From the NCBI GenBank assembly GCA_030704615.1, contig CM060732.1:68696001-68760000 (forward strand): DNA of 64,000 nt, given 5' to 3'. The translations under genes and the position numbers were made by a program. Below, piece by piece: positions 2,280-56,458 of the stretch (the first letter of the stretch is position 1; every line of letters begins with the position of its first letter). The stretch is from Takakia lepidozioides (taxonomy: Eukaryota > Plantae > Bryophyta). A model generated the notes under the pieces. It was not told the DNA's origin. It saw nothing but the letters and a program-made list of their open reading frames with translations, and did not search any database.

Positions 2280-2716
2280 CCACTAGATATTTCGAGATCA
2301 ATATTGGATCCACGGCCCTGTTAGTCGCAAGTGTGAGACTCTACGGGTTTGGCGATTCTGGGGAGGGAGATGCGGAGGAGAGTCTCGGGGGAAGAGTCTC
2401 GACAGCGGCGGAGGACTAGTATATATATCCTCTGCCCTTCTCAGCCGCATCAGAGCTCCTAGTTTTGCAGTTGTCTCTAGGGATCATCCTCACGTTTGCA
2501 TTTTGCATGTTTTTCTTCCCACTTTTAGTCCCCTCTATACTGACGTTAAGTAGCTTATCGAAAGCCTTCCAACCTTCAGTTTATTTGCTTGAGGTGTTAC
2601 TCCTCGGATCCCTGTTGCAAGCATAGTCAGTTTATGTCCGCTTGAAAGAACTCTCAGTCTCAGTGCAGCATTACCCGCAGGCTCAGATCTCAGTTTCTCT
2701 CGATCAGCTTGTGAGA
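2280..2716 (+). promoter_or_regulatory. 5' region and probable 5'-UTR intron of F-box gene copy 1
   Basis: Conserved in three copies (2280-2716, ~28145-28647, ~40600-41020). Candidate GT donor at ~2419 and acceptor tttctctcgatcAG at 2707, 9 nt before the ATG. Confidence 0.6.
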
Positions 2717-3979: not shown

Positions 3980-4299
3980 CTACCTTATGTAGTTATTATG
4001 GATGCACAAATTGTGCATAAACTGTGATTTTGTCAATTTGATGTACCTTCGCGTTGAAACCAGTAAAGAGGGACTTCTAGGATGTAGTTTCGCTTAATCT
4101 CAGCAAAGAAGCTTTGAAAGAGGTAATCTCTTAAGAGTTTGCATTTGGTACCTATCACTGTTTGCACTGACTGTTTCAGTAAACGGATTTTCCTTGTGTA
4201 CAGCAAGTCTTGAATCAAGAGTGATGTCCCTTCAGTGTGATTTCCAAGAAAGTACTTTCACATAGCCAATCCATCCTCTTTCATTTTCTTTCATCTCAG

Positions 4300-5117
4300 A
4301 CACATTATCACACAAAGTGCACCATCTCCTCAAAAGATAGAGGACAAATCTTACGATGGAGGTTACATTACTTACAACTAAGGATATGAGGTTGCACTCC
4401 ATGCACATATCACAACCACAATGATCAGTGCTGTTTCATTTTCCCAGCTGTTCCTCCATCTCCTCTCATGGAGATCGAAGCCTCTAAAGCATCTCTACCA
4501 CACCCTTACTGAGCATATCCTGCTTGCAATCATCAAGATCCATGAAACTACATCTTGTTCAGCCGTAATGTGCATCCTTTACTCCCACATGTTGTATACA
4601 TGTTCACAAGGGTATTCTCCACATTAATAATAAAAGACGACAGTGCAGCCTTGGTGATGTCAGAATGGACATTTTCGCCTTTTCCAAAGCTCCTAGGGGG
4701 CGCACGCATTGAGAATGCAGGTGAATGTGACCCTGTTGGGTATCACTCCATTATGTTGCATTCGATAATGTGGGCCTGCACTACTCTATTTCATTAAGCA
4801 GAAATATGTTTGGCTTGAATCCACTGTCAATAATGTAGGCCTGCACCTGCTTCCCCTCAGAGACGCCTTTCATGTTGATGCACTCCTGCAAGAGACAAAC
4901 ATAAGTGTTGCAGTAACCTGAATGCCTCGTTCGTTCAAAATGTGCAGCACCTTCTTAAGTCATCCTGCCTTATGCAGTGTCCTGGCATCCCCACAAGAAC
5001 CAGCAGACTTCTTACTCGTTCCCTTTCTTGGTCCTCTAGCAGTGGTGAAGGTGGAGGTGCTACCCCGGCTGCCAGCGTAATCTGCACACACGACTGTGCC
5101 TGATTCAACCCCGCCAT
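4300..5117 (-). pseudogene. Degenerate PLS-class PPR gene remnant
   Basis: Minus strand from ATG 5117 gives frameshifted peptides DDLRRC..HILNERGIQV..CLLQECINMKG..GKQVQAYIIDSGFKPNIFLLN, paralleling the N-terminus of the intact PPR at 56458. GYAQ and NTLVNMY relics lie at 4480-4760. Confidence 0.75.
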
Positions 5118-7235: not shown

Positions 7236-7871
7236 ATGGCGAGTACAGCGCAGGCGGGGTTGATGGCATTACAGTGCCGGGGCTTTGCGGGGCCCGCCTC
7301 TCTGGGATCCGCACAATGCATCGCTTTCAAAGGTTTGGGCTTTGCCCCCCTTCGTGGGTCCCGTGGTACTAGTGAAAGGCGCCAATCGAAGGAGAGCTTG
7401 CAAATCCGAGCTATGGCACCCAAGAAGAAAGTGAATGCCTACGATGCTGGATGGAGCAAGCAATGGTTTGGAGCTGGAATTTTCGCTGAAAACACCGAGA
7501 CTGAGCCTGTTAACATTGTGAAAAAATTAGAGAAGAAGAAGCTTTTGAGCCAAGTGGAAAAGGCAGGCCTGCTCTCCAAGGCAGAGAGCGCTGGCCTGTC
7601 TCTCTCTACCATTGAAAAGCTGGGTTTGCTTTCGAAAGCCGAAGACCTGGGACTTTTGAGCCTGGCAGAGAAATTCGCCACGGCTTCTCCGCCAGTTCTG
7701 GCATCTCTCTCTCTCCCTCTATTTGTGGCATCCATAGCCACCATTGTCTTCGTCCCTGATGACTCTCCTACTTTGGTGATTGCACAGAACTTCGTTGCTG
7801 CCCTACTGCTTGCTGGAGCTGGAGGCTTGTTTATAGGATCAATTTTGCTTAGTGGATTGCAAGAAGAATAA
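7236..7871 (+). CDS. DUF1118 chloroplast thylakoid protein, RIQ2 (At1g74730)-like
   Basis: Transit-peptide-like N-terminus, then MAPKKKVNAYDAGWSKQWFGAG..VEKAGLLSKAE..LSTIEKLGLLSKAEDLGLLSL and two C-terminal TM helices ending LSGLQEE. Recognised from memory of the family. Confidence 0.85.
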   Translation: MASTAQAGLMALQCRGFAGPASLGSAQCIAFKGLGFAPLRGSRGTSERRQSKESLQIRAMAPKKKVNAYDAGWSKQWFGAGIFAENTETEPVNIVKKLEKKKLLSQVEKAGLLSKAESAGLSLSTIEKLGLLSKAEDLGLLSLAEKFATASPPVLASLSLPLFVASIATIVFVPDDSPTLVIAQNFVAALLLAGAGGLFIGSILLSGLQEE

Positions 7872-24895: not shown

Positions 24896-26454
24896 ATACA
24901 TATTTAATAACACACTTTACTACCACACTACAACTTGACAGGATTTGAACATCAAACCTCATGTTTATTGTTCATCGCTCTTAACCACTACACAACCTGC
25001 CATTTTCCACAAACTCTTGCAACAACTAATGCTTTATCTATATATTGTGGGCTCCAGCAAACTAGCTTATGTGTTTTGTGGGCCCCAGCAAACTAGCTTG
25101 TCGGTCAGACCTAGCAACATACTGGCCGGGTCCGGGTAGGGGCGCTCCCACCCCTTGCCACCCCTCTGCCACAAGTGGGCCCCACCGCAACCACATGCGC
25201 GGGCATTCAAGACCCTAATATTGTTCAATGATAAGCGTAAATATGTAAACCCAAGTTTCATTTCAAAGAAAATCAGCAAGTGAGAAGATAGCACGACGAA
25301 GTGGGGGGGCTAGTGGAAAAGCAGGAGAAGGACACGCAGCCGCGAGAGAAAAAGGGCGTTGTGGAGTAGACAGTGAGCCCGGGCTGTAGGGACACCTAGA
25401 AAGAGGGGGGAGAAATGTTTTATTTAGGTAAGGTAAAAGATAGGCCCACCATTGGAACAACCAGTGGTAACTCTTTATGGGGTTGGAAATAGTGGAAACA
25501 TGTCAAATAGTGGGGTGGTTTATGTAGGGTAGGACACGTGGGGGCGTCTTAGAAGATTCTTTTCACTAATTTTTGGCACGCTTACATTCTTTGATATTTG
25601 TTTTCGGAAAGGGGATGAAACATGAAACCCTAAATGGATTGAAAAACGAGGGAAATCTAAGAGAAATGTGTCTTTTCCAAAAAAAAACACTCGGTTTCTG
25701 GGATGTAGAACGCTCCGCATATTGCGGTGAGGACTACTCAGGCCCTTTCTCTTCTCTTGGATGGTGTACATCTCCTTGTCAATGAACTCTCCAACTCCTT
25801 CTACTCAATACTCTTTCTTTTTGCTTTCAAAACATTTGTCTCTATCTCTTCATTTGGTTGGTTGATGTATATATATATATACCATCAAAATATTTTAGTA
25901 AATTGTAATGCGTTCACCACAAGGTCACCACATAACCATAGAATTGAACTTGTATGTCGGCATATTGTTTATTTTTGTTTGGTTGGTTTTTATCATAATT
26001 AATATCTAGAAGTGTTGTAATATTTCATTGAATGTGTGAAGAATAATCAGCCTTTGGCATGGCTTCTATGTAAGGTTTTTTTTTCCTTATTTTTAAATAA
26101 AAAACAATTCCAGGGCCACTGTCCCTTGTTCTCTAAAAAAAAGAAAAAAAGAAAAGAAAAGAAGAACAAGCAATACAGTGAGAGCAGATTCGCAAAACAT
26201 AATTTCAAAATTCAGTTTAGATCTTCAAATTTCAGTTGTTTTTTGGGCAGCCAATAAAAATGACGACGATGATGTGATGATGAGGTGGTGACCATTACTC
26301 TACGCTAAAACTAGTCTCTGACCTTGAGTTGTCATTAGAACTAGGGCTGCGTGTTGCCCGCACTACTAGTGACAACTTCCAAAGTGACAACTTTCAGGGA
26401 GAACAATGTTTAGGTTTTACAAATTAATTGATTAATTATAATTAAAAAAATACT

Positions 26455-27840: not shown

Positions 27841-28647
27841 GACCCTACGGTGATCCGACCCCTTTGTAAGCCTAGCAGAGTTATTTTTCCCTTGTTCCCT
27901 CTTTTGAGTTTAATTTGACAGTGGGGCCTCTCTGTCCCCTTTTATTAGGAAAAAAAACAAAGTGGGACCCGGTCCCTGGGCCATAAGACCAACTATTACA
28001 TCCTTTCATCTGTGGCACTGATGTTGATGGATGGCATTGAAAAACCATTTTTTTACATATTTTATTTTTATTTCTTATTTTTTTCCAAGAGGTGTTTTTG
28101 AGTTACATATTATTCTTTGAAAAAATGAGCTTCATTACGAAGAGCCACTAGATGGTATGAGATCGATGTTGAATCTACGTTCCTTGTTGTCGCACGTGTG
28201 AAACTCCACGGCTCAGGGGGAGTTTTGGGAAGTCTCGGGCGCAGCGGAGGAGTAGTATATATATTGTCTGCTCTTCTCACCCGCATCAGAGCTCCTAGTT
28301 TTGCAGTTGTCTCTAGGGCTCCTCCTCAAGTTTGCATTTTTCTTGTTTCTCTTCCTACTTTAGTCCACTCCATACTGACGTAAGTAGCGCATAAGACCTT
28401 GTCGAAAGCCTTTCCAGCCTTCAGTTTATTTGCCTAAGATGTTAATTACTGCCTATTAGTTCTTAGATCCCTACTGTAACCGTAGTCAGGTCAGTGAACC
28501 GGACTCTCTAGAGATTGTTCTGGTGACTAGAACCCCAACATCGTTCTCTCCGAGTTTGTCTTGAAAGGATTCTCAGTGCAGCATTGATTACCAAGATCAA
28601 CATTGTTTGGTCCAGTACTAGTTTTCAGTTTCTCTCTGCTTGTGAGA

Positions 28648-29868
28648 ATGGAGCGTAACCAAATTGACGTCCACAACAACATAGCTTTTCCTCATCATAT
28701 TGTGGACAATCTGGAGTCTGTGTTTTCTAGGCTTCTTGCTCATGACGTAGCCACCAGTCTCTGCGTATATAAAACATGGAATCAAGTGGACATCTTGTCC
28801 AGAGAGTTTTCCGATCTGCGTTTGTCGTTGAAGACCGAAGATTGGTATTTTCCTACAGCTATGGTTGGGTTGGACAGTATGGACTCTGGGCCGCAGGAAT
28901 GGATAGGGCTCCATCACCCATCAAACACTTGGCGCAAGCTGCCGTCTTTACCAGCTCCTATGGGGAAATGTGTGATTCTCACAGGATCTGGAGGGCTGCT
29001 TTGTGTCCAAGACAAGTCTTCTGCGGATTTCTGGCTTAGTCCTCTTTTTGTGTGTAACCCGATAACCAAGAGGTGGAAAGAGCTTCCTAGATTGCCAGCA
29101 CCTATCGAAGCCTCCTCATTACCTGGGTCCTCACCAATTGTCAAGCACATGCCGATCAAGCATGTTAAAACTAACGATGGTTGGGGTTCCAGCTATAAGA
29201 TAATCTTCCTATGGTCTGGGATCATGTACGAGTATTCCTCACAAACGAACGGGTGGAGAATACAGGAATTTGCTCACGTTTCCACATATGCATAATTGCT
29301 CCCAGGTAGTGCAGTTTGGGAGGGGAGGGTTATGACTGGGACTACACCGTTCAAGCTTTTGATATTGAACGTTGTGTATGGATAGAGGACATCTACACTC
29401 TACACCCCAATGTTGAGACTGAGATGTTTTTGAGTGATAGCTGCTACAAACCACACCTGCTGGTTTGCAGAGGTAAGTTTTTTGCTGTGATCCCCACCTT
29501 TCTTGACATGGAGGACAGGCTGGAGGACATTGAAGATGTTGACTTGGATTGGACTTACATATGTGGTTTCTTAGTGTTGAAGCTGGATCTTCAAGTCAAA
29601 AAAATTGTCTATCAGAAGATTGGCATGCCACCGGACTTGTGTAGCTCTGCCTCATGGGCGCGATGTTGACGCATGGATATGTCATTCTACTCCAGAGGGA
29701 GACACACCATGGTTGGCAAACCAGGACTACCTCATCAAATATGAGAAATTGTTCATGTGGGGGATTGACAACATTGCACAAGACACTAGATTTCCCAGAC
29801 TCATGGATGAAGATTACATGTCGTACAATGACTCTGCATTCCACCCTAGCTTCAGTGCCAAGCCCTGA
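28648..29868 (+). pseudogene. F-box paralog (copy 2), disabled
   Basis: Collinear with 2717-3979 through to ..PSFSAKP*. Premature TAA at 29293-29295 (CAA in copy 1), a deletion near 29330 and a frameshift near 29645. Confidence 0.9.
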
Positions 29869-30299
29869 TTATCTTGTGTAGTTATCATGGATATGCCCAT
29901 TGTGCATAAACTGAAAAAAAAAAAACCCATGTGATTGGTCAGTTTTGAGGTGTACTCTCTACATTGAGGACTGTCATTTCGAAATCAGCTTGTTGAGAAG
30001 GACTTCTAGGATCTAAGTTCACTTCATTTCAGCAAAAGAAGCTTTGAAAGAGGTAATCTTTTACAGTTTGACTTTGGTAGTGTCATTGTTTGGGCTAATT
30101 GTTGCAGTAAACGGAACTTGTTTGTGTACAGCAGGTCTTGAATGAAGAGTGTTGTTCTAATGGATGTCCCTTCAGTGTGATTTCAGAGTATCCAATTTCA
30201 GATAGCTTGATGAAAGCACTTTCACATGGGCCACTTTATTCTTTCATTTTCTTTCATTTCGAGATAGAGGACAAATTTTACTCTAGGGTTTTTTTTTAC

Positions 30300-31256
30300 C
30301 CACCAATAAAAGAATATAAGGTTGCACTCCTTACAAATAGCACAAAGCCTATGGCGAGTGCTACTTCATACCCAGCTGTTCCTCCTTCACCTCTCATGGA
30401 GATTGCCTTTACAGTAGCCAGGATTGCTGACATCAATCCAACTGAGCCCTAGTTCCTCCTCTATCCTCCAACATTTTCCACAACTTTGCTTTATCATCCC
30501 AGCGGCCAGCCGCAGCATATATGTTTGACAGTAGTACATAACCTGCTTCATCCTGTGGATCAATCTCCAGAAGGGATTTTGTTGCACGCTCTGCTATCTC
30601 CACGACGTCATGAATTTGGCAGGCGCCAAGCAACGCCCTCCACAACCCAACATGTGGTTTGATAGGCATTTTGTGAATAAAGTCCTTTACCTCTTCCAAC
30701 AGTCCTACACGGCCAAGAAGGTCCACCATGCAGCCAAAATGCTCTTTGGTAGGGGTTAGGCCATGATCTCGACTCATGGAATCAAAGTACTCCTGGGCTT
30801 TATCAACTAGACCAACATGGCTACATGTAGAGAGAAGGGATGAAAAGGTGATGCATTTCTTGCCTTCCTGTCGCATTTGTTCAAATAGGTGCAGGACCTC
30901 CCTATCACACCCATGCTGAGAATATCCTGCGATCATGACATTCCATGAGACAACGTTTCGCTCGGAAATACTGTTGAACACTTTACTTGAATCCTGCACG
31001 CTCCCACATTTGGCATACATATCAACAAGGGTATTCTCCAAATTCAGATACGGTAGAACTCCAGCTTTGAGGATGTCATCATGGACCTCCAGACCCTTTT
31101 CAAGAACCCCCAGGCTCGCACATGCATTCAGCACACAATTGAACGTGACTCTGCTGGGCCTCACCCCTTGTTGTTGCATTTGCTCATAGATCTCTAAAGC
31201 CTCCCTTCCACACCCATACTGAGCATATCATGCAATCATCGAGGTCCATGAAACTG
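30300..31256 (-). pseudogene. PLS-E(-DYW) PPR pseudogene, 5'-truncated at a LINE
   Basis: L-S-P2-L2-S2-E1-E2 motifs (EHFGCMVDLLGRVG, WRALLGAC, YVLLSNIYAAAGRW), an in-frame stop near 31228, a frameshift after E2 and a decayed DYW region. Confidence 0.88.
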
Positions 31257-34200
31257 GATCTGGTCACCACTGCCCTATCCCCGGTGAGCTCGAATAATCT
31301 CTGCTGCTCTCACTCGCTTCTCTCTCCCTTTCTCTTCCCTTTCTGAGACCTATCTACTGTTATAAAACCAAGCTTCATATATGTTGCAATTTTCCCTCTT
31401 GGACTATTCTATTCCTTCCCAATATTGTCATCCCTGCTTGTGGACAGTTGCTATGCCCTGTTTCTTCCCTCTCTTGCAAAGTTAAAGGGCTTTTCTCGAT
31501 CAAACTCTGGCTGGACTCTCTCATTTCTGCAATTCCCTTTTTTCATCTCCAGCTTCCCTTTGCTCTGTATGATCAGCCATCAATTCGTTGGATCTCACCA
31601 ACGGGCTGGGAAAAATTCCCCACCCTATTCTCTTGGAACATACGTGGTATGGGCTCGGATACCACTATGCCTAAAAGATGACGAGTAAAATTGTGGGCTT
31701 CTTCCCTTATGTCTACTTCAGCTATCATTTTTCTCCAAGAAACTAAGTTAAATGATGGTAAGATCAGATCCATTGGAAATAGCTTCTGGCCCTCGCAGGT
31801 TGCATGGTGGAACCCCACTATTTCCTCCTCTCGTGGAGGAACGGCGATCCTGGTATCTCCGACCATTGCTGGTTCAATAAACAAAGTAGAAATCTAGATC
31901 CAGGGTCGTGTCCAATGCCTTTTCACGGACCCCTCCTCTCCCTTTGGCCCCACTGCTTTCATAAATGTGTATGCGCCGAATCTATCTCAGGAAAGAGCTG
32001 TTCTCTGGGATGCTATCAAAGTTAAAATTACCAGTTTTCCCAATGTTTAGAATTGGGTCCTAGTTGGGATTTAAACATGGTAGATAATTATAATGATAGG
32101 CTGCAACACGCCTCACATTTTTTGTCTGATGAAGAGCAAGTTGCTTGGGATATGTTATGTTTCTCAGTTGGATTGGTGGATATCATTTTCAAACTCCTCC
32201 TCTGGATTAAGATTCACGCGGTCCAATTTGAGGAATCCTCCCGACCTTTGTATGGCTCGGCTGGATAGAATTTACTGTTCTCAGTCCCCCCTGGCCTAGT
32301 CTAAAGGTATGGCTCAGACCCCTATACTAGCGGACTTTGATCATGCCATGGTTGCTGTGGAGTTCTATCCACCTGGACTGCATGCTAGAGGTCGAGGTTA
32401 TTTTAAACTCAACCCAACATTCTGAAAAAACAAGACTGTCTGAAGAAGCTGAAAAAGGAATGGATGGAAGCAGGGGCTGGGTTTCACTCCCCCTCCATTT
32501 CCTTTTTAAATAAACTTCAGGCTACACGCAGATTGGCTCAAGACCTTTCCCGCTCTGTTGCTGCTGAAAGAACACAACATCATAAGGCATTAACTAAATG
32601 TCTGCTGCATTGCCAAAGAAGAATTGAAGGAGGGAATCATGGTGTAATTACAATGGAATCCTATCTTGCAGCTAAACGTAATTTGGCAGTACTGGATGCT
32701 GAAAAGGAAGAATTCCTTCGTATTAGAGCGGGAGTGAATTGGTCGTTGAAGGGGGAGAAGATGACTGGTTATTTCTTCCAGAAAGCAAAACAGTGAAGGG
32801 AAGCAACACACTTTCACGCGATTACAAACCCCAGCGGGGTGACCTTCTCCCAACCCAAGGAGATGGCTGCAGCAGCTGCAGACCACTTTGCCAAGCTCTT
32901 TTCTGCTTCTCAAGAGGAAGTTAACTTGCTAGAATTTTGTTCTGAGGTTATCCAATCCTTCCCAAACCTTCTCTCTGTTGACGAGCAGAATGCCCTTGCT
33001 GCTCCCTTTCTTTCTGACGAGTTGTTGAATGCTGCAGAAGCGCTGAATACGTTTAAGACTCCAGGGCTAGATGGACTGCCTGTGGAATTCTTCATTGCCT
33101 TGTGGGAAGAGGCGGGGGAAGACTTTACACGAATGGCCAATGATATTTTATCTAAGGGGATCATGCCTTCGCAACTGGCGCAGGGAGTCATCACCTTGGT
33201 TCATAAAAAAAGTGACCGAGAACTTCTTTCAAACTATAGACCTATCACCTTGCTGAACTCTACTTACAAAATAATTGCAAAGGCTCTTGCTTGCCGTTTG
33301 CAACCCTTGTTGCAAAAGGTAATCAGACCAGAGCAGTCAGGGTTCCTAAAAAATAGAATGATCCTTGATAACATTTTTCTTACCAATGAGGCAATGCATC
33401 TGGCTTGCATTGATAACCCGCCTATAGCTCTGTTAATGTTGGACTTCGAAAAGGCCTTTGATAACATTAATTGGGACTATCTTTTGAAAGCCCTAGAAAT
33501 TGTTGGGATCAAAGGGAACTTCCTTAAGTGGATTCAAATCCTTCTTTCTGCAGCTTCCAGTAGAGTGGTGGTCAATGGCACGGTCTCCAAACCCTTCCCT
33601 CTATTCAAATATGTAAGACAAGGGTGTCTGTTGTCCCCCTTTCTCTTTCTTATAGCAGCAGATGGTTTGGGTCACTTACTACATAAGAGAAAAGACTCAT
33701 TGGGTCTGGTTGATCCTAATTCCCCGAATGACATTTCCTCTTCCATTCGCTCTTCGCTATATGCTGATGACACATCCTTGTTCATTAACAACTCTTCTCT
33801 TTCCAATGTCCATGCGGCTCTCAACTCGTTGAAGGCATTTTGTGCAGCCTCAAGTCTCAAAATCAATTGGAATAAATCTGTTGGTTTATTAAATGGACTG
33901 GCAGACCCATCTGTTGCAGCTCACATTGCCCGATGGGGCATTGAATTTGGCTTGAGATGGCTATTGGATGGAGAATCCATGAGCTCTTAGGTCAATTGGT
34001 GGGAACTGATCTCTCAGATGATACCAAGTTTGCTGCTGTCCTTACAAAACTTAAAAGGAAGCTTGCACATTGGTGTTCCTTGCATCTGTCGCTCGTGGGT
34101 AGAGCTTTAATTGTTAACCAAGTGGCTTCACTGTGGTTTTTGGCTTCGGTTTGGTCGCCGGGAGCTCTCATAATAAGAAAGGTAAAATCCCTTATGAGGA

Positions 34201-35199: not shown

Positions 35200-36603
35200 A
35201 GGCAACTACTCTTGTGAGTTGTATGAGGAGACTGGCCCCTTGCGTAAAGGGAGTCAGTTAATGTTCGTGAGTGGGATAATTTCCGGAACTAACGTGTCGT
35301 TGTTGGTGGACACAAGAGCATCGCACTCCTTCATGACATCGGCAACGGCACGAAAGCTGGGACTCCCGACAAGTGATGTGGGCCTCTATTGAAGTGATTT
35401 CTGCCAAAGAAGAACCACAATTGGCGACGAGGTTGGCGTTCAATGTTCCTCTTCAGCAGGGGAGTTGGGAGGAACGTGAGAACTTCACCATGAGATCGAT
35501 GGATTGGATCTCATTTTGGGGATGACATTTTTGAGCAAATCAGGAGCGGTCATAGATGGTTGCAAGAGAGTAGTCACGCTATCGTGTAGGAATGGTGGCA
35601 AAGTTTTACGAGTTTCGAAAACGCCCAACCCAGTGGGAGGGCAAATAAACCTGCTGTCAGCAAAGGAGTGGGCCGTGGAAGAGCCACACGAGCCCCAATT
35701 TTTGCTTTACGTAAGACAAGTGGAGGGAGAAGGCAATAGGGAGCCGAGCCCAGATTAGATCAAGGGGATCTTGAAGAAATACCAGGATGTGATGTCGGAG
35801 GATTTAGCAAGCGACTTACCATCGCGAAGAGGAGTTGACCACAAGATTGAGGTGATACCGGGATCGGAGCCGCCTGCCAAGGCGCCCTACTGGTTGAGCG
35901 ACAGAGAGTTGGTCGAGCAGAAGGCTCAGCTGAAGGATCTAATGTCAAAGGGGTTCATCTGGCCGAGTAAGACACCTTACGCAGCCCCGGTGCTATTCGC
36001 AGACAAAAAGGATGGGACGCTGCGGATGTGTGTCAATTACAGGGCTCTGAATAAGGTGACTATCAAGAACCGGTACCCTTTGCCAAGGATCGACGACCTC
36101 TTCGATCGGTTGGAAGGAGAGAAGTATTTCAGCCGGATCGATTTGCGGTCCGGCTACCATCAAATCCGAGTGGCGGAAGGAGATGAGGAGAAGACCGCGT
36201 GCAGGACAAGATATGGTTCATATAAGTTCTTGGTGATGCCTTTTGGGCTCACCAACGCACCCGCGACCTTTAGCACGCTAATGAACAACATTTTCCAGGA
36301 GTGGTTGGATGACTTTGTGATCGTGTACATCGACGACATCTTGGTGTACTTGAAAACAAAGGAATAACACCTGGAGCACCTCAAAAGGGTGTTCCAGAAA
36401 TTGCAGGAAGGGAAGCTGTATGCCAAAACTTCAAAGTGCGAATTCGGGGTCACAAAAGTGGAGTTCCTAGGGCATGTGATTACACAGGATGGGATCAAAA
36501 TGGATGAACAGAAAAGTAATGGCGATCTTGGACTGGGAGCCTCTAACTTCGGTACCAGGAGTGCGATCATTCCTAGGACTCGCCTCCTATTACCGAAAGT
36601 ATA
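35200..36603 (+). mobile_element. Ty3/gypsy pol fragment (protease + RT)
   Basis: [39 protein letters not shown] and [13 protein letters not shown]. Confidence 0.9.
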
Positions 36604-37049: not shown

Positions 37050-38032
37050 TGTCGCGTACCTCACTTCACTTCGGTAAGCTCCCCTTCAAGTCATAGTTAC
37101 TTGCTTTGATGCGCGCGCCTAATTCCCAAACTGGCCATCGGGCCAATTCGGAGCTTCGGCTGCTAACCGGGACATAACGGTCCCCCTTTGCTCCTCCACA
37201 AGACCCTCTCTCAATTTGGGCCTAGTGGAAATTCCCTTTGGTTGTTGGCAGTCCAGAACTGCTCCCCACACCTTGGTCGCTTTCCGGCTCGCACGCTTAC
37301 TCACTAGTTTTGGTCACCAACGGGCTTGCACCGTTCTCGGGGTTACTACTCCCTATATATACTTCTGTGACTGTCCGCGGGGGTTTCACAAACAACACCA
37401 TCCTTTTATGGCGAACCACCACGAAAACCCTCGATTCCCGGCGATGAGTCGCGGTGAGTCTTGGCCCACTCAGCACGACCCCATTGGACCGTGATGAGTC
37501 CTAAGACTCCCCACGACTCCCACCACAAGGTCTCTACCCCATGGTGAGTCATATGTCACCCCCACTAAGACCCACTAAGCTACCACCACTCCTCGTGGAC
37601 CCACCCCCACTGCAACCCGGTGTGCGGGGCTCCACCTAGTGAGCGCCTCCGCCTCCTTGAGTGCCTTGGGCACTCAATGGTGCTTCAGCCCCCATTCCTA
37701 TTGTTGCCACTGCCCCCACCACAGGGGCAGCCCCTCTTGTGTCCCGACCCCCCGCCCTTAAGGCAAAGGGCGCGACACACACCCCTACCAACAGGGAGTC
37801 GATGTCCTCATCGACTTGTCCATTTTGTAGAAACTAACATCCAAGTTGTGGCGTCCCACATCAAGGAGTTTGTTTCCATACCATGGCGTCTCATGGCAAG
37901 AACCAAACCCCCACTTGACTCTACTTGTCACTAGCTAGTTCGGCCGACTTTCTCCAAATCCCGGCCAAGGGTGGAGCCTCTCAAGCTCCACCCAGTGCAC
38001 TCTTCTTGGCCCACTTCAGGGCCAAGGAACGA
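37050..38032 (-). repeat. LTR family 2, partial
   Basis: Begins tgtcgcg like 38729 and 43891, with a long alignment to both. Confidence 0.9.
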
Positions 38033-38728
38033 TTTTGTTTGGAATGGTGATGCATGTTATGATCGGCTAGTGTGTAGGATGCATGCTAGCTTACAAAAGT
38101 GGGAGAGGTAAATTGGATTAATCGTGTGTTTGCACAGAGCCGAAATCGGGTGACTCCCGTCCAAGGGGCAAGGAAACTTACGCCTTCTTTGGGAGTTCAC
38201 GTGCTAGTGCGCACCTGGCGCGTGCGCGTACTATAATTGCGCTACCGACCTTGACATAGTCATGTTCGCACGATATTTACTTAGAGCGTCCATATTGGCA
38301 TGTTTGTTACTGGCTCTATGGATGATCTTAAAGTCATAGTCTTGAAACATCACGATCTATTGTCATCTCCTTCCATATGCATAATTCATAATAGCCAACC
38401 ATCCCAGGGGTTTATGATCGGTCATTATCGTGAAAGGGGTCTAATAAAGATATTGTTGAAAATTATGCATGATGCCCCAAACCAACGCGTAGTACTTGTC
38501 TTCCATGAGGTGAGAGACTCGAGATGATGCAACTAAGAGCCGCTTCACTTTTTGGCTACTACCCCCATTTCTATGCAGGGAGGATGTTTCTTTTGGAGGT
38601 TTGAAAGTGCCTTGCAAGCATACCGTAGGTTCATAGCAGATTAGGCACCCCAGAGCCTAAAAATTATTAAATTTGGAATATTCTTTTTAGGCATTTTGAA
38701 AAATGATTTATGTAAAGTAGACATTTTT

Positions 38729-39955
38729 TGTCGCGCACCTCAATTCGGTAAGCTCCCCTTCAAGTCATAGTTACTTGCTCTGATGCGCACACCTAACTCC
38801 CTAACTGGCCGCCGGGCCAACTCGGAGCTTCGGCTGCTCACCGGGACATAATGGTCCCCCTTTACTCCTCCACAAGACCCTCTCCCAATTTGGGCCTAGG
38901 GGAAATTCCCTTTGGTCGATGGCAGTCCGGAATAGCTCCCCACACCCTGGTCGTTTTCCGGCTCGCACGCTTACTCACTAGTTTTTGGTCACCAACGGGC
39001 TTGCACCGTTCTCGGGGTTACTACTCCCTATATATACTTCTGTGACTGTCCGCGGGGGTTTCACAAACAATCATGCCATTTTATGGCAAACCACCACAAA
39101 AACCCTCGATTCCCGGTGATGAGTCGCGGTGAGTCTTGGCCCACTCACCACGGTCCCATTGGACCGTGATGAGTCCCAAGACTCCCCACGACTCCCACCA
39201 CAAGGTCTCTGCCCCCATGGTGAGTCCTATGCCACCCCCACTAAGTCCCACTAAGCTACCACCACCCCTCGTGGAACCACCCCCTACCGCAACCCGGTGT
39301 GCGGGGTTCCACCTAGTGAGCGCCTCCGCCTCCTTGAGTGCCTTGGACACTCAAGGGTGCTTTAGCCCCCGCATCTATTGTTGCCACTGCCCCCACCACA
39401 GGGGCAGCCCCTCTCGTGTCCCGACCCCCTGCCCTCAAGGCGAAGGGCCGCGACACACACCCCTACCAACAGGGAGTCGATGTCCTCATCGACTTGTCTA
39501 TTTTGTAGAAACGAACATCCAAGTTGTGGCGTCCCACATCAAGGAGTTTGTTTCCGCACCATGGCGTCCCATGGCTAAGAACTAAACCCCCACTTGACTC
39601 TACTCTCCACTAGCTAGTTCGACCGACTTCCTCCAAGTCCCGGCCAAGGTTGGGGCCTCTCAAGCTCTTCCCAGTGCACTCTTTTTAACCCACTTCAGGG
39701 CCAAGGAACGATCCTCCCCAAGGATCAAATCGCCTTACTACAACAACATTTGCTTGCGACCGCTCGTGATGTCGCTTCTTGGCATCACCTTGAGCAAAGG
39801 TTCGCCTTGAACCCTTTTTGACTAGGAAGATAACCTTGAACCAACTGTGCGCCCTAATCACTACAATTGGGTCCGCCTTGGAATGCTGGCCTGAGGTACG
39901 GGAACACGCCGAAGCCGCACTATAACTTCGTCCCGAGGCTACATGATTATAGTAA
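38729..39955 (-). repeat. LTR family 2, nearly complete solo copy (~1.23 kb)
   Basis: Aligns with 37050-38032 plus 36604-36803. Confidence 0.9.
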
Positions 39956-39959
39956 GAAT

Positions 39960-40092
39960 GTTGGTTCTGAGTGGTACCTCTGTAATCTGCCTTATGGCTC
40001 TCTGTAAGGTTATTTTTTCCTTACCTCTTCTTCAATAAATTTGTCAGGGCTACAATCCCTCTGTTTCTTAAAAAAAATAAAAAAATAAAAAT
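39960..40092 (+). mobile_element. LINE-type 3' tail with A-rich end
   Basis: Similar to the tail at ~26040-26165 (tgtaaggtt..aataaa..cagggc..ccct..aaaa). Confidence 0.55.
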
Positions 40093-40360
40093 AATGAAGT
40101 AACGGTTCACAATCAGGTGGAAAAAATAACCACCAGGGAGGCCCTTATTTAGGCTAGCTTCGGCTGGCGTCATATACCTATATATATAAATATATAAATA
40201 TGTGTAAGCTAGAGGATGGCACCTTACGCGCTAAGGTACCCTCCACACAAGTACACTGAGAAATTTGAGCCAGTTCTTTACGTCTCATGGGGCCACTGTC
40301 CCGCGTTCTTTTAAAAACAACATGTTCTTTCCATTTTTGAAAAAAAAAAGAAAAACACAT

Positions 40361-40563: not shown

Positions 40564-40599
40564 CTTTGGTGAGTTACATACTATTTCTTGAAAATACAG

Positions 40600-41030
40600 A
40601 AAGCTACTAGGTAGTGTGAGATCGATGTCAGATCTACGGTCCTGTTAGTGGCATGTGTAAGTCGTCACGTAGTAGTAGTATATATAGACATGCCGCCAGC
40701 GGGTTTGACAACTCTCGGGAGCAACAGGGAGAGTCATGGGGCAGCAGCGGAGGACTAGTATATATATCCTCTGCACTTCTCACCCGCATCAGAGCACCTA
40801 GTTTTGCAGTTGTCTCTAGGGATCCTCCTCATGTTTGCATTTTGCATGTTTTCTGAAGTCCCACTTTAGTCCCCTCCATACTCACATAAGACCTTGTAGA
40901 AATCCTTCCAGCCTTTAGTTTATTTGCAGCTTCAGCTTGAGGTGTTACTCCTTAGATCCCTGTTGCAAGCGCGTAGTCAGAAGAAGTCAGTGGTTCAGTT
41001 TTAAGTTTCTCTCAGCTTGTGATAATCACC
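40600..41030 (+). promoter_or_regulatory. Third copy of the F-box 5' region/intron with the start codon lost
   Basis: Aligns with ~2280-2625 and the acceptor tttctctcAG|cttgtga (41015). Copy-1 gagaATG is replaced by gataatc. Confidence 0.8.
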
Positions 41031-41145
41031 TTAGTCCTCACCAGTTGTGAAACGCATGCTGATTGAGCAGGTTACTAACGATTGTTGGCTTGGAATACTG
41101 ATATATGATCCCTAACCAAATGAACCATGAATAGTAACCTACACA

Positions 41146-41302
41146 TGCTTCTCAAGTACCAGTGAGGATCGACCGAGGTGATGAGGAGTCTACGATAGGT
41201 GCTAGTTTATCTCAGCTTGTCCACCCTAGTCCTCACTCAGTTCCAGCACCTCTCGTAGCCTCCTCATCACCTCGGTTGATCCTCACTGGTACTTGAGAAG
41301 CA
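41146..41302 (+). ncRNA. Candidate MIRNA/hairpin-RNA precursor derived from F-box coding sequence
   Basis: Arms 41146-41203 and 41245-41302: 58 bp with 55 Watson-Crick pairs, 1 G:U and 2 U/C mismatches; 41-nt loop. The 3' arm is sense F-box sequence and the 5' arm is antisense. Transcription is not shown. Confidence 0.65.
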
Positions 41303-41509
41303 CATGCTGATTGAGCAGGTACTATTGATGGTTGGGGTTCCTACAAGATAATCTTTCTCTGGGCTGTCATTGTCTTAACAACCACAGTGAATGCATGTTC
41401 GATATGGGTCTGAGTTGTATTGGGCACTGATGTATACCATGTATGGACTTCAATCTAGAACGCTATGTGGGTTGCTATCTGCCAGGCCCATTCCCTGTTG
41501 CATGGTGGC

Positions 41510-42603
41510 CCTTAGCTCTGAGCCTCTCCTGGGCAGGCTGAATTTCAGTGTGGAAGTTCTTTGTGGATGACCTGTTTTAAATCTTTTATTTGTCATTTGT
41601 TCCCAGTGTTTGACCAGGCACTTCTTCCAGGCGACAACTCTTGGCTTTGATGAAGGTAATTCATCACCTCTCCACTATCTACACATTGGAGTTTTGAGCG
41701 ATTTTTGAGATGATATGAACACCTCAGATTTTAACCCCTAAACCCTGAGTTCAAAAACCTAAAGTGGAGCTGTGACAAAAGTTAACAGCCTGATTCAATG
41801 CTGAATTTACTCAGACCACAATTATGGCTACTTCAAACCCAGGGTAATATCAGCTGAGTGCTTGTGGGTTATGCGTCAGATTTGCTCTACAAGGATGTTG
41901 GCTGGCTTCCTTCCTTTGCATAGAAGAGTATTGGGGCAGACTTAACTCCTCAATTAGTTAACCCTACCTTGATTCCACCATCTCGGATCCATCTTGAGAA
42001 CCTTTTACCATATTAGTGGGTGTGTATTGAACTCCAGAGTGTCCACTATTGGAAAAAGGTTGTTTAACTCCCCTTGATTGTAAGCTTTCTGGCCTTCTTG
42101 CAGAGTTAGATATCATAAGATCTGTGTGGAGTGCGTGGGAGCAAGAAGACACAGAGGCTATGAACAATACTTTGGCGGGTACTCTGGAATCTTAAATTAG
42201 CAAAACATCCGCTCAGTCCTAGTCGGTACCATGTTCTTAGTTGCTTATACATCTCCAAGAAAATTCCAGAGGCATGCAGTCTCCCTCGGACGTTAAAGGT
42301 GACTGAGGCTTCTTATCCTAGGTCCCAATCATGGCCATAATCTATATGCTGAAGCTTTTAGGCACATGCAATGAGCAAAAATAGATGCCACATTGCAGCC
42401 TTCCTTGTCTACTTTGCATGTTCTTATCCTCAGTTGTGAAAATGGCACAAATGTACATGACTTGTTGTACTTTATCCTTTTGCTTTTGTCTGCTTCTCTG
42501 AATTCAGTATAGGTGTTGCTTGGGTTCCTGGGTCAGTCTGCTGGGGCTCAGCCAGTGGTGAAGTGCCAGATTATGCAGCCTGTGTTGGCCTGCAAGCTTC
42601 TTT
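41510..42603. repeat. Inverted copy of 8676-9757
   Basis: Continuous reverse-complement alignment. Confidence 0.85.
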
Positions 42604-42690
42604 AGATATCAGATGGCCCAGTTTGTTCGATGTGTAGGAATCCATATGGCCCAGAGGGATGTCATGTGTTTGGATCATGTGGTCTTGGCA

Positions 42691-44510
42691 ACCACCGCTT
42701 CCACCAAGCGGCTGATGGAATCTTCGGACAGCTCCTTGGTTGCCCGAGTCATGTTCAATTGTCGGGGTTTTGCGCATTTCTTGGCCATGTGCCCAGGCTC
42801 CCCGCAATTAAAACACACTCCATCGAAGGTCGCCTTCTGTCCGCAATAAGCCGCCGCACCTGATTTTTCTTTTGGAGCACCGGGTGCCGCCTTGACGTGT
42901 GAAGGCCCTCCCTTCGATTTCCATGTGCCATTGTCGTTGTGTGGCCTATCCCACTTCTTTTCCGGTCGAAATGAGTCACTCTCGCGCCGAGTCTTCTTGT
43001 GGTTCAGCTCCGTACGACCTTGTTTTTCGCCCCTAGGGACAACCGAGAAACATTCAGCCCTTTCAATTGCCAACTCATTCAAAGTCTTAGGTGGCTTCGC
43101 CTCCAACTTCCGCCTGGCCCATGGGGCCAGTCCTGCCACAAAGTTGAAGACCATTCCTGGTTTTGCCATATCTGCGACTTCGAGCAACAGCACATTGAAA
43201 GCCTGAACATATCCCCGAATGTCATCCGTTTGCTTCAAATTCCTCATCTTGTCTCGGGCAAGCCATGACGCGTTGAATGGAACAAACTGTCTTTTCATAA
43301 ATACCTTGAACCCACTCTAGTTCAAGGTTTCCGAGTTTCGACCTTGGTCGTGAAGGCGTTTCTGCCACCATTGTTGAGCATAGCCGCTCAAATAGGTAGG
43401 AGCCACCTCCACCCGATCCTCGTCACACAACTTGGCCGCCTGGAAGTACTGCTGTAGCTCCAAGAGCCAGGTGTTGAGTGCCTTTCAATTTTGGACGCCC
43501 TCGAAGGTGTCGGGTTCTTTAAGCTTCACCTTAAACTTTTCCTTAGTGGAAGTGACATTAGCCGCCTTCAACATGTCTTTCAACGTCCCACCAAACCGCG
43601 CCAACCCTTCCCAAAAGGTTGCTGGCATGGAAGATATCTGTTGGTCTACCGGAGCCCCCGGGAAGTCCTCGGGCTCCGACTCCCCAGATTCCTCCCGTTC
43701 TTGAGCGGCCTCGCTTTCAAAAGCATGAATCGCCTACTCAAATTGCCGCTTCGGTGACACGTCGCCCCCATTGGGCTCACCAAGATCATCATCTTTCGGG
43801 CGGTTCCGCTTTCGCTTTGGCTTGCCCGACCCCATGATGAGGCCGATCTCAAGGACGATCGCGTACTGAACTCTAAGCTCTGATACCAAGTGTCGCGCAT
43901 CTCACTTCGGTAAGCTCCCCTTCAAGTCATCGTTACTCGCTTTGATGCGCGCGCCTAACTCCCAAACTAGCCACCGGGTCAACTCGAAGCTTCGGTTGCT
44001 CACCGGGACATAACGGTCCCCCTTTGCTCCTCCACAAGACCCTCTCTCAATCTGGGCCTAGTGGAAATTCCCTTTGGTTGTTGGCAGTCCGGAACAGCTT
44101 CCCACACCTTGGTCGCTTTCCGGCTCGCACGCTTATTCACTAGTTTTCGGTCACCAACAGGCTTGCACCGTTCTCGGGGTTACTACTCCCTATATGTACT
44201 TCTGTGACTGTCCGCGGGGGTTTCACAAACAACACCATCCTTTTATGGCGAACCACCACGAAAACCCTTGATTCCCGGTGATGAGTCGCGGTGAGTCTTC
44301 GCCTACCCACCACGGCCCCATTGGACCGTGATGAGTCCCAAGACTCCCCACGACTCCCACCACAAGGTCTCTGCCCCATGGTGAGTCCTATGTAACCCCC
44401 ACTAAGACCCACTAAGCTACCACCACTCCTCGTGGACCCACCCCCACCGCAACCCGGTGTGCGGTGCTCCACCTAGTGAGCGCCTCCGCCTCCTTGAGTG
44501 CCTTGGGCAC
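42691..44510 (-). mobile_element. Ty3/gypsy 5' end: partial LTR (43891-44510), tRNA-Met PBS (43877-43888) and degenerate gag
   Basis: ..GCGCGACA-ct-TGGTATCAGAGC; gag motifs LKEPDTFEG, ARDKMRNLKQT and CFNCGEPGHMAKKC. Confidence 0.92.
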
Positions 44511-45190: not shown

Positions 45191-45569
45191 TAAGCGCCAT
45201 TCCCCCTCGCATGGAGATTATTTTCTTTAATCTTCTCAATGTATATAAAGTGTATTCCACAAAGTTTAGGGTTAAGAGAGTAGTGCTCATGCAAGATCTG
45301 ATTGTGGTTTTGGAAAGAGTGAGTGAGGAGTGGAAAGAACGATGTTTGGTTTTGACCATTCACACCCAAATGAGGGAGATGCTGCATAAAAGGAAAGGCA
45401 TAAGGGTGTTGTATTATGTGTGCTAATGGGATGATTACATGTGGGAGGCGTGGGGTATTTCATCCTAGAAAATGCATTACTTTCCGATCATCCTGCGATT
45501 GAGGGCACAGTACCGAAGCCCCAAATTGGCCAGACTCATGAGATGACACGCCTCGCATCGGAGCCCCCG

Positions 45570-45660
45570 CCCTTTGCCTTAAGGGCGGGGGGTCGGGACA
45601 CAAGAGGGGTTGCCCCTGTGGTGGGGGCAGTGGCAACAATAGGAACGGGGGCTGCACCCA
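45570..45660 (+). repeat. Inverted fragment of LTR family 2
   Basis: Reverse complement of ~37686-37770, i.e. the sequence that should follow the LTR break at 44510. Confidence 0.85.
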
Positions 45661-53911: not shown

Positions 53912-56458
53912 TCACCAGTAATCCCCACAAGAACAAACACCATCTTCAAAGTGATGAAACCGGTTGGCATCCCGTACAATAACCACTCGCCCAACTATCT
54001 TTGAGATGAACTTGGTGGCACTGTGGCAGTCACCACACACCCGAAGGTTCTTGATGATGCGGACAGGCGTCCTGGGGGGTGTGCTGATGAGCCCAAAAGC
54101 TATGGCCAGCTTCTCACTGTGGTAGCAAAGAGAAAATTCTTTTTGCACCTCCTCCAAATCATGCAAAACAAAGCGTGTATCAGGCATGTACCCAGCTTCC
54201 TTCATCTGCCCAGACAATCTCTTCAGCTCAGCAAGGATTTCCTTAATTTGTGGATGAGATTTGTCCTCTACAAAGAATGAATGCACCTGGAGGTTAACTT
54301 CAATGCAACTACGGCCAGCCTCCTTTCTTATACCTCTGTCCTCCATCATTTTCCTCACCTTTTCTTTATCAACAAATCTGCCAGCTGCAGCATAAATATT
54401 TGATAGCAGCACATAAGCTGCCGGGTTCTGTGGATCACTCTTGAGAATACTTTTTACCGCACGTTCTGCTACCTCCACATCTCCATGAATTTTGCACGCG
54501 CCAAGCAAGGCCCCCCACACCCCAGAACCTGGTTTGATTGGCATTGTGTTGATGAAGTCCTCTGCCTCAGTCAATCGCCCGGCACGGCCAAGGAGATCCA
54601 CCATGCAACCAAAATGCTCCACTGAAGAAGAGAGGCCATGATCCCTACTCATGGAATCAAAGTAGTGACGGGCTTCATCGACTAGGCCCACATGACTACA
54701 TGCACAGAGAACGGATACGAAGCTGATACCATCCGGATTCAAGCCTTCCCGCTGCATCTGTTCAAATAATCGCAGGGTCTCCCTACCACACCCATGCTGA
54801 GCATATCCTGCCATCATAGTGTTCCATGAAACCACATTTCGTTCAGCCATATTATTGAACACTTGACGTGCATCCTGCACACTCCCGCATTTGCAATACA
54901 TGTTAATAAGGGTATTCTCCAAATTAATATATGACACAATTCCAGCTTTCATAATGTTCACATGGACCTCCTTGCCCTTTTCCAGGGCTCCTACACTGGC
55001 ACATGCATTGAGAACGCAAATGAAAGTGACCCTGTTGGGTGTCACCCCTTCCCACTCCATTTGCTCATACATCTCAAAAGCCTCCTTATCATACCCATGC
55101 TGAGTATATCCTGTGATTAAGGCATTCCATGAGACCACATTCCGTTGAGCCATATTGTCAAACACTTGACGTGCATCTTTCATGCTCCCACATTTAGCAT
55201 ACATGTCAGCAAGGGCGGTCTCCAATATTACATCTGACAGTACTCCAGCTTTGATGATGTCAGCATGGACCTCCTTACCTTTTTCCAGAGCTCCTAGGCT
55301 GGCACAAGTATTTAGAACACCAATGAATGTGACTTTATTAGGTACCACTTTTTTCCATTGCATTTGCTCATACATCTCCCAAGCATCCCTACCATACCCA
55401 TGCTGAGCATATCCTGCAATCATCATACTCCATGAGACCACATCTTTTTCAGTCATATTGTCAAACACCTGACGTGCATCCTTCAAGCTCCCACACTTGG
55501 CATACATGTTAACAAGGGTATTCTCCAAATAAATACTCGATCCAATTCCCATCTTCATGAAGTTGGCATGGACCTCTTTGCCCTTTTCAAGGGCTCGTGC
55601 ACTAGTACATGCATTGAGAATGCAACTGAATGTCACCTTGTTTGGAATCACCCCTTCCCGTAGCATTTGCTCAAACATCTTGAATGCCTCCCTACCACAA
55701 CCATGTTGTGCATATCCTGCAATCATTGCATTCCATGATACCACATTTCGTTTCGCCATATTGTTGAACACTTGATGTGCTTCCTCTACACTCCCGCATT
55801 TGGTATACATGTGAACAAGGGTATTCTGCAAATCAATAGATGACGCAAATCCAGCTTTCATGATATGAGCATGTACCTCCTTTCCCTTTTCGAGGATTCC
55901 TAAGCTGGAACACGCATTGAGAAGAAAAATGAATGTAATCTTGTTGGGCGTCAACTGTTTCTGTTGCATTTGATCATAGATCTCAATAGCGTGCCTACCA
56001 TACCCAAGTTTTGCATATCCTGCTATGATCATGTTCCACGTAAACATATCTCGTTCAGGCATTCCGTCAAACACTTGGCGAGCATCCCTCACACTCCCAC
56101 ACTTGGCATACATATTGGCAAGGGTGTTGAATAGGAAGATGTTTGGCTTGAACCCACTTTGCATAATGTGGGCGTGTACCTGCTTTCCCTCTACTAGCCC
56201 TTTCATATTGCTGCATGTTTGCAAGAGACAGATATAAGTCTCAGAGTCTGCCTGAATTCCTCCTTGGTTCAAAATGTGCAGCGCCTCTGTCAGTTTTCCT
56301 GCCTTACATAGTCTCCTCAAATCCCCACAAATACTTAAAGAGTTATAGTAGACTCCCTCCCCTGGGAGTCTTTCAACTGCAGTGCTCACAGTGGAGGTGT
56401 TAACCGTCCAGCCGGTTTGATGTGTGATAAGCAATTGTCCTGGGTTGAACTCTGCCAT
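53912..56458 (-). CDS. PLS-class PPR protein with E1/E2 and DYW deaminase domain (organellar C-to-U RNA editing factor)
   Basis: Uninterrupted 848 aa with regular P-L-S triplets, HSEKLA, CGDCH and terminal SCGDYW. A splice-acceptor-like CAG lies 1 nt before the ATG. Confidence 0.96.
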   Translation of the reverse strand: MAEFNPGQLLITHQTGWTVNTSTVSTAVERLPGEGVYYNSLSICGDLRRLCKAGKLTEALHILNQGGIQADSETYICLLQTCSNMKGLVEGKQVHAHIMQSGFKPNIFLFNTLANMYAKCGSVRDARQVFDGMPERDMFTWNMIIAGYAKLGYGRHAIEIYDQMQQKQLTPNKITFIFLLNACSSLGILEKGKEVHAHIMKAGFASSIDLQNTLVHMYTKCGSVEEAHQVFNNMAKRNVVSWNAMIAGYAQHGCGREAFKMFEQMLREGVIPNKVTFSCILNACTSARALEKGKEVHANFMKMGIGSSIYLENTLVNMYAKCGSLKDARQVFDNMTEKDVVSWSMMIAGYAQHGYGRDAWEMYEQMQWKKVVPNKVTFIGVLNTCASLGALEKGKEVHADIIKAGVLSDVILETALADMYAKCGSMKDARQVFDNMAQRNVVSWNALITGYTQHGYDKEAFEMYEQMEWEGVTPNRVTFICVLNACASVGALEKGKEVHVNIMKAGIVSYINLENTLINMYCKCGSVQDARQVFNNMAERNVVSWNTMMAGYAQHGCGRETLRLFEQMQREGLNPDGISFVSVLCACSHVGLVDEARHYFDSMSRDHGLSSSVEHFGCMVDLLGRAGRLTEAEDFINTMPIKPGSGVWGALLGACKIHGDVEVAERAVKSILKSDPQNPAAYVLLSNIYAAAGRFVDKEKVRKMMEDRGIRKEAGRSCIEVNLQVHSFFVEDKSHPQIKEILAELKRLSGQMKEAGYMPDTRFVLHDLEEVQKEFSLCYHSEKLAIAFGLISTPPRTPVRIIKNLRVCGDCHSATKFISKIVGRVVIVRDANRFHHFEDGVCSCGDYW

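Follow-up and report, generated by a model that had tools for sequence, protein, structure and literature searches.

A bryophyte tandem family of F-box/beta-propeller genes has what appears to be a third, decayed member (copy 3) in the window, that is, the whole 64-kb stretch of Takakia lepidozioides DNA analysed here, and this member carries a near-perfect hairpin built from the coding sequence of the family itself. The most probable reading of this locus, at a probability of roughly 0.5, is that copy 3 is a rearranged pseudogene remnant which would stand at the hairpin-RNA or proto-MIRNA stage at most, with a weak effect in trans, if any. An earlier note on this DNA had proposed an origin by inverted duplication of the F-box CDS; this origin, with the duplication lying behind a retained 5' region, is supported by the sequence, since both arms are CDS-derived and follow the family 5' block, and it fits the published route to young MIRNA and hairpin-RNA genes. 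Inverted duplication is known already as a source of MIRNA genes; what is added here to the account of the origin is a sense-antisense-sense layout, a loop that duplicates a junction, and an outer repeat in decay. The further idea in the note, that the locus is co-expressed with the parent family and possibly silences it, is somewhat weakened by the analysis. The hairpin gives no sign yet, as far as its sequence can tell, of being a selected regulator of the family. The features of the locus and its surroundings are listed in Table 1.

Table 1. Features of the copy 3 locus, its parent genes and the flanking retroelement sequences (positions in the window).
Feature	Positions	Strand	Description
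Parent copy 1	2717-3979	+	intact 420-aa F-box/beta-propeller ORF; upstream block 2403-2630
Parent copy 2	28648-29868	+	pseudogene; sole good complementary site 29095-29129
LTR-like direct repeats	37062-38033, 38736-39712, 43891-44510		92-95% identical, GC 56-57%
Distal upstream homology, copy 3	40570-40661	+	71-77% to 28099-28199 and 2278-2337
Proximal promoter/5'UTR block, copy 3	40727-40980	+	identity to upstream blocks of copies 1 and 2
5'UTR end, copy 3	40997-41027	+	90% to 28620-28649
Unit 1, sense CDS fragment	41028-41095	+	fused directly to 5'UTR end
Antisense segment overall	41116-41203	+	outer decayed part plus 5' arm
Outer, decayed antisense arm	41116-41145	+	reverse complement aligns with 41303-41344
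Hairpin 5' arm	41146-41203	+	antisense to F-box CDS
Loop	41204-41244	+	second copy of 5'UTR end and deletion junction
Hairpin 3' arm	41245-41302	+	sense F-box CDS, PAP..SS..K region
Sense CDS continuation, outer 3' arm	41303-41366	+	HMLI.Q.T.DGWGSY.IIFLW; tblastn residues 175-193
1.1-kb repeat	41510-42604	-	89% to 9757-8676, inverted orientation
gag/CCHC ORF	42675-43298	-	Pfam Retrotrans_gag and zf-CCHC; adjoins 1.1-kb repeat

The parent family is represented in the window by one intact and one broken gene. The Pfam scores of intact copy 1 are slightly below threshold (F-box, 20.1 against 20.5; At3g26010-like propeller, 23.5 against 25), and an exhaustive HMMER search returned 137 relatives, the best of them at 30-35% identity and with E-values down to 8e-20. 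The nearest relatives align over the same residues and have clear F-box and KIB1-4/kelch propeller domains, so that the F-box/beta-propeller architecture (an N-terminal F-box followed by a kelch, KIB1-4 or At3g26010-like propeller) is recognized in copy 1 via its relatives; these domains, together with the low identity, indicate a lineage-specific F-box/beta-propeller group. Copy 2, which shares 84.5% identity with copy 1, contains an in-frame stop near 29293 as well as deletions of 31, 4 and 4 nt, and it is therefore a pseudogene as assembled. The three frameshifting deletions add up to 39 nt and so restore the C-terminal frame, while the stop remains. In the array unit, 2690-4475 and 28625-30403 are 77% identical. 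PPR/E-motif fragments are also present 3' of both copies (4486-4996 and 30458-31254); they are related to 54333-56330 and thus to an intact PPR-DYW gene on the minus strand at 53912-56458, and the presence of such a fragment behind each F-box copy indicates that the tandem unit consists of an F-box gene plus a PPR piece.

Copy 3 retains the upstream region of this family. Its segment 40742-40980 is 84.8% identical to 2403-2630 of copy 1, and 40727-40927 is 83.2% identical to 28227-28433 of copy 2. A TATA-like run at 40759-40767 has its counterparts at 2420 in copy 1 and 28256 in copy 2, and the core promoter (40741-40860) shares 91.5% identity with that of intact copy 1. Lineage-specific changes across 198 columns of the promoter block number 11, 15 and 11 in copies 1, 2 and 3, respectively, and on these counts the block of copy 3 shows no quicker decay than its counterpart in intact copy 1; a similar block is also kept by pseudogene copy 2. 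Because its core promoter is kept as well as that of the intact gene, the copy 3 promoter, which lies about 390 nt upstream of the fold-back, may still fire, at least weakly.

Downstream of the promoter block, the gene structure of copy 3 is largely lost. The acceptor-like sequence tctcag is retained at 41010-15, the former start codon now reads ATC (41025-27), and about 475 bp of CDS, equivalent to about 2722 to about 3192 of copy 1, has been deleted. The candidate donor of the 5'UTR intron, gacGTtaagt in copy 1 (2545-46) and gacGTaagt in copy 2, has AT in place of GT in copy 3 (40886-87). Beyond the deletion, 41025-41088 in unit 1 is 82.8% identical to 3193-3256 of copy 1 and corresponds in tblastn to copy 1 residues 160-180, and all homology to the F-box family stops at 41366 (CDS position about 3283). 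According to the earlier note, the upstream region is present a third time, the ATG is lost and almost all of the CDS deleted, and an intron acceptor survives; each of these points is borne out here, the last as an acceptor-like sequence.

The pieces that remain are arranged as sense, antisense, junction copy and sense (DUP-INV-DUP). The loop matches 41003-41046 at 34/38 aligned bases, with gaps of 5 nt and 1 nt, so the 5'UTR end is present twice in the locus. As read from the sequence, this layout is characteristic of complex duplication and inverted duplication at one site, and not of a simple head-to-head gene pair. The loop also duplicates, at 41206-41215, the acceptor-like tttNtctcag of 41006-41015, and the mature RNA would lack its 5' arm if splicing used this second acceptor-like site.

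The order of these events can be read from shared changes. Units 1 and 2 both carry TTGAGCAGGT, which differs from both parents, and this common state indicates that the two units split after copy 3 had diverged. A 7-nt insertion, CACTGGTACTTGAG and ACTATT occur both in unit 2 and in the antisense arm, and in neither unit 1 nor the parents, which indicates that the inverted copy was taken from the unit-2 lineage and arose later still. On this evidence, copy 3 had already separated from copies 1 and 2 when the inverted duplication took place. Across 113 columns, the remnant CDS has accumulated 14 lineage-specific changes and each of the two parents 7; this decay, about twofold faster, is as expected for non-coding sequence that has lost its coding constraint.

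Each arm of the hairpin is 58 nt long and 41 nt lie between them in the repeat search, giving a core fold-back of 157 nt; our own count of the stem (41146-41203 with 41245-41302) yields 55 Watson-Crick pairs, 1 G:U pair and 2 mismatches. When folded as RNA, 41100-41350 reaches -133.5 kcal/mol, while its dinucleotide shuffles average -65.7 +/- 4.6 (z = -14.8) and none of 200 folds as well. The minus strand of the region folds equally well (-142.9 kcal/mol, z = -17), and the stem persists within 731 nt of the putative transcript. In the whole 64-kb window, this hairpin is the sole inverted repeat of at least 30 bp with arms no more than 400 nt apart, and hence it is not part of a hairpin background. 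The arms are 95% identical to each other and 76-88% identical to the parents. The 3' arm with its continuation is sense F-box sequence, as 41243-41366 aligns with 3167-3283 (76.6%) and 29095-29218 (75.6%), while 41171-41203 of the 5' arm is complementary to copy 2 at 29097-29129 (87.9%). The stem geometry, the sense identity of the 3' arm and its continuation, and the closer match of the arms to each other than to the parents had all been claimed beforehand and were reproduced, and the fold of 41100-41350 that the earlier note had called for gave the strong hairpin.

The inner and outer parts of the inverted repeat differ in their preservation. Arm identity is 55/58 in the inner stem and 19/27 (about 70%) in its outward continuation, which also has a 12-nt indel (Fisher p = 0.0036). 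Selection on pairing, gene conversion from arm to arm, a second recent event, or error-prone synthesis at the breakpoint would each explain this contrast; the better kept inner stem could mean selection or gene conversion, and with it more function than the preferred reading allows, and it could equally mean error-prone breakpoint synthesis.

The targeting capacity of the hairpin was assessed by scoring all 21-mers of 41100-41350 against both parents with our own implementation (mismatch 1, G:U 0.5, doubled at positions 2-13). A penalty of 5 or less is reached by 16 registers, all of them from 41170-41205 and all on copy 2 at 29095-29130. Ten of these fall at 3.0-4.5 on the pseudogene, and the lowest penalty, 3.0, is that of 41176-41196. 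The 21-mer that the earlier note had given as its example, 41179-41199, indeed forms a duplex with 29101-29121 of copy 2 that contains 2 mismatches and 1 G:U and has a penalty of 4.0. Moreover, when the whole window was scanned by Hamming distance, antisense 21-mers with at most 3 mismatches turned up on copy 2 only. Intact copy 1 has no register at a penalty of 5 or less and no antisense 21-mer with at most 3 mismatches; at the target segment it differs from the hairpin by 3-nt and 7-nt indels as well as substitutions. Within the 64-kb window, the hairpin by these scores matches the dead gene (copy 2) and not the live copy 1, and better targets may exist among paralogs elsewhere in the genome.

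The plant MIRNA criteria attributed to Axtell and Meyers (2018) reportedly ask for a single hairpin of at most 300 nt without a large internal loop or secondary stem in the duplex, for a miRNA/miRNA* duplex with no more than 5 mismatched positions, at most 3 of them asymmetric, and for a single miRNA/miRNA* pair, with overhangs of 2 nt at the 3' ends, to account for most small-RNA reads, as replicated in independent libraries. The 157-nt fold-back is within this size, with a stem interrupted only by two 1-nt mismatches, and every 21-nt register has, structurally, at most 2 mismatches and 1 G:U. As in the Allen 2004 model of a proto-MIRNA, both arms also show homology to a protein-coding gene, here copies 1 and 2, one arm in sense and the other in antisense. 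The sequence thus has the structure of a MIRNA or hairpin-RNA locus, with predicted complementarity, within the window, to a pseudogene only. No known family was found in Rfam, either in E-value mode over 38-44 kb or in gathering mode over the whole window; the best match, mir-6302, scored 30.4 bits against a gathering threshold of 90 and lies on the opposite strand. A literature search found no relevant Takakia small-RNA or miRNA work and no bryophyte small-RNA study covering the locus. By analogy with published fold-backs, a near-perfect stem of 58 bp is an siRNA-type (proto-MIRNA) architecture, not that of a mature MIRNA.

Young plant MIRNA genes have been shown to arise by inverted duplication, with 16 such loci reported by Fahlgren et al. 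2007 (PMC1790633); in that work, large and near-perfect new fold-backs probably yield heterogeneous siRNAs first and require a nearby promoter, a near-perfect long stem is a poor DCL1 substrate in the published model, the promoter of the parent was co-duplicated in MIR163, and young miRNAs directed at F-box genes, miR774/859, are listed. Like the loci of Allen 2004 and Fahlgren 2007, the copy 3 hairpin has arms homologous to a gene well beyond 21 nt, one of them antisense to the parent mRNA. Unlike the Fahlgren 2007 loci, whose small RNAs have been sequenced and whose targets have in many cases been validated, it is described here at the DNA level; its stem is still near-perfect, that is, at an earlier stage, and its best-matched paralog is a pseudogene. 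In Arabidopsis halleri, Aha-miR217 derives from an F-box/RNI gene by a 66-bp direct and a 263-bp inverted copy, and F-box-derived miRNAs have also been cited for Fragaria vesca (bioRxiv 10.1101/2024.07.25.605110). On this comparison, Aha-miR217 is a very close structural precedent for the copy 3 hairpin, as both have an F-box parent and direct and inverted copies of one exon segment, matching the sense/antisense/sense layout. Aha-miR217 differs in that it yields one defined 21-nt miRNA, for which a site is predicted in the exon of its parent, and this parent is unrelated to the lineage-specific bryophyte F-box/beta-propeller family of copy 3.

Mosses possess the DCL machinery needed to dice RNA from inverted repeats (PMC3565333), and inverted pseudogene pairs in rice give rise to hairpin small RNAs (PMC2708354, where endo-siRNAs from pseudogenes in mouse oocytes are also cited). 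As at copy 3, inverted decayed gene copies form the dsRNA stem in rice, and the small RNAs may hit nothing or the parent; the rice stems, however, are 155-185 bp long with loops of about 1 kb and involve two pseudogenes, whereas copy 3 has a 58-bp stem and a 41-nt loop in a single remnant. The Arabidopsis PAI1-PAI4 inverted repeat reportedly silences its paralogs (Melquist and Bender, 2003). It resembles copy 3 as an inverted repeat of an endogenous gene with an upstream promoter, there with silencing signalled to paralogs, and differs as a whole-gene repeat that acts via DNA methylation, while the comparison with copy 3 is at the sequence level only.

The surroundings of copy 3 are rich in retroelement sequences and may be silenced. 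The 1.1-kb repeat starts 144 bp past the end of the F-box remnant and has a CpG observed/expected ratio of 0.19; as a proxy for silencing this ratio does not discriminate in the window, because genes and repeats overlap (0.19-0.97, with 0.43 at the locus). The three LTR-like repeats bracket the hairpin locus, two of them just 700 bp apart, and small inverted pieces of the same repeat occur at 45568-45659. Upstream of the locus, RT ORFs of degraded retroelements are present at 32839-33990 and 35771-36367 (RVT_1, with a YIDD-type motif), and the window also contains PPR-E/DYW genes that lack introns, along with fragments of Ty3-type RT and gag. As well, an intronless DUF1118 ORF (7236-7871, Pfam E = 2e-47) has its best matches in Sphagnum (75%), Physcomitrium (74%) and Marchantia (71%) and so serves as a marker of bryophyte DNA; a 152-aa JGI protein is 91% identical to it, which hints that sequence from a close relative is already public. 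Capture of a gene fragment by a transposable element (Pack-MULE or LTR transduction) was considered as the primary origin of copy 3 and rejected, since 39983-40099, upstream of copy 3, matches 26044-26164 near copy 2; this upstream homology to the neighbourhood of copy 2 is better explained by a tandem-array member invaded by transposable elements than by a captured fragment. A MITE origin was rejected as well, because both arms are CDS-derived.

The main competitor of the preferred reading is that the locus is inert, so that the hairpin would exist at the DNA level only, with no Pol II transcription or with silenced chromatin, and would yield nothing or unrelated heterochromatic siRNAs. This has a substantial chance of being right, if a lesser one. 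The remnant is truncated on both sides and bordered by the gag ORF, the 1.1-kb repeat and the LTR-like repeats at 38736-39712 and 43891-44510, it has lost the candidate donor site, and neighbouring copy 2 is also a pseudogene, which suggests an array in decay; the promoter block, moreover, is conserved about as well as the others, and conservation alone is thus no proof of activity. A wholly inert locus fits less well with a core promoter this close to that of the intact gene, its TATA run included, and with an inner stem kept so much better than the outer repeat. The same contrast, with the stem core 95% paired and the outer repeat at about 70%, is the pattern expected if pairing is maintained, and it is one of the points in favour of a young selected MIRNA or hairpin-RNA gene that would be co-expressed with the F-box family via the shared promoter and would silence its members in trans. 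Both arms also come from the family CDS and follow a copy of the family promoter, register 41176-41196 reaches its low penalty on copy 2, and Aha-miR217 from an F-box gene and the young miR774/859 against F-box genes are precedents. This reading is nevertheless improbable, as the sole well-matched site in the window sits in the pseudogene, intact copy 1 is separated by its indels and has no antisense 21-mer within 3 mismatches, the long near-perfect stem would be a poor DCL1 substrate (PMC1790633), no known miRNA family matches in Rfam, the candidate donor GT is AT in copy 3, and the locus is a truncated remnant among retroelement fragments. It is a long shot that a MIRNA has been caught at birth in an early-diverging moss, with a co-duplicated promoter, a selected stem core and small RNAs that regulate F-box members elsewhere in the genome.

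An inverted arm made by a fold-back chimera of long reads is hardly credible. Chimeric reads can create inverted duplications, but a palindrome that is an artefact should be perfect, and in most cases large or located at the end of a contig; the arms here, in contrast, differ at 3/58 positions, the repeat extends outward in a decayed state with an indel, and the loop copies, with divergence, a segment found elsewhere in the locus. As the sequence shows, copy 3 has lost its start codon, about 475 bp of CDS and everything past CDS position 3283 or so beside retroelement fragments, and local duplication and inverted duplication have left the sense fragment, the antisense fragment, the second 5'UTR junction and the second sense fragment; under the preferred reading of a rearranged pseudogene remnant, the 58-bp stem is a by-product of this rearrangement. 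A transcript from the retained promoter would fold into a near-perfect dsRNA stem and might be processed by siRNA-type Dicers into heterogeneous 21-24-nt siRNAs, so that a hairpin-siRNA or 'proto-MIRNA' output would be expected and not a precise miRNA/miRNA* pair, and its effect in trans would probably be weak and fall mainly on pseudogene copy 2.

What the locus means depends on its expression. If it is silent, it would be an ordinary rearranged pseudogene, gene-derived hairpins would then arise readily as by-products of rearrangement, and the case would call for caution in predicting MIRNA genes from sequence alone. To our knowledge, nearly all documented cases of the inverted-duplication route come from flowering plants. 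If copy 3 is expressed and diced, it would therefore be a clean bryophyte example of this route to new small-RNA genes, and the intermediates would all be seen together in one 40-kb array, namely the intact parent, a paralog that has become a pseudogene, the co-duplicated promoter and a fold-back whose outer stem is in decay.
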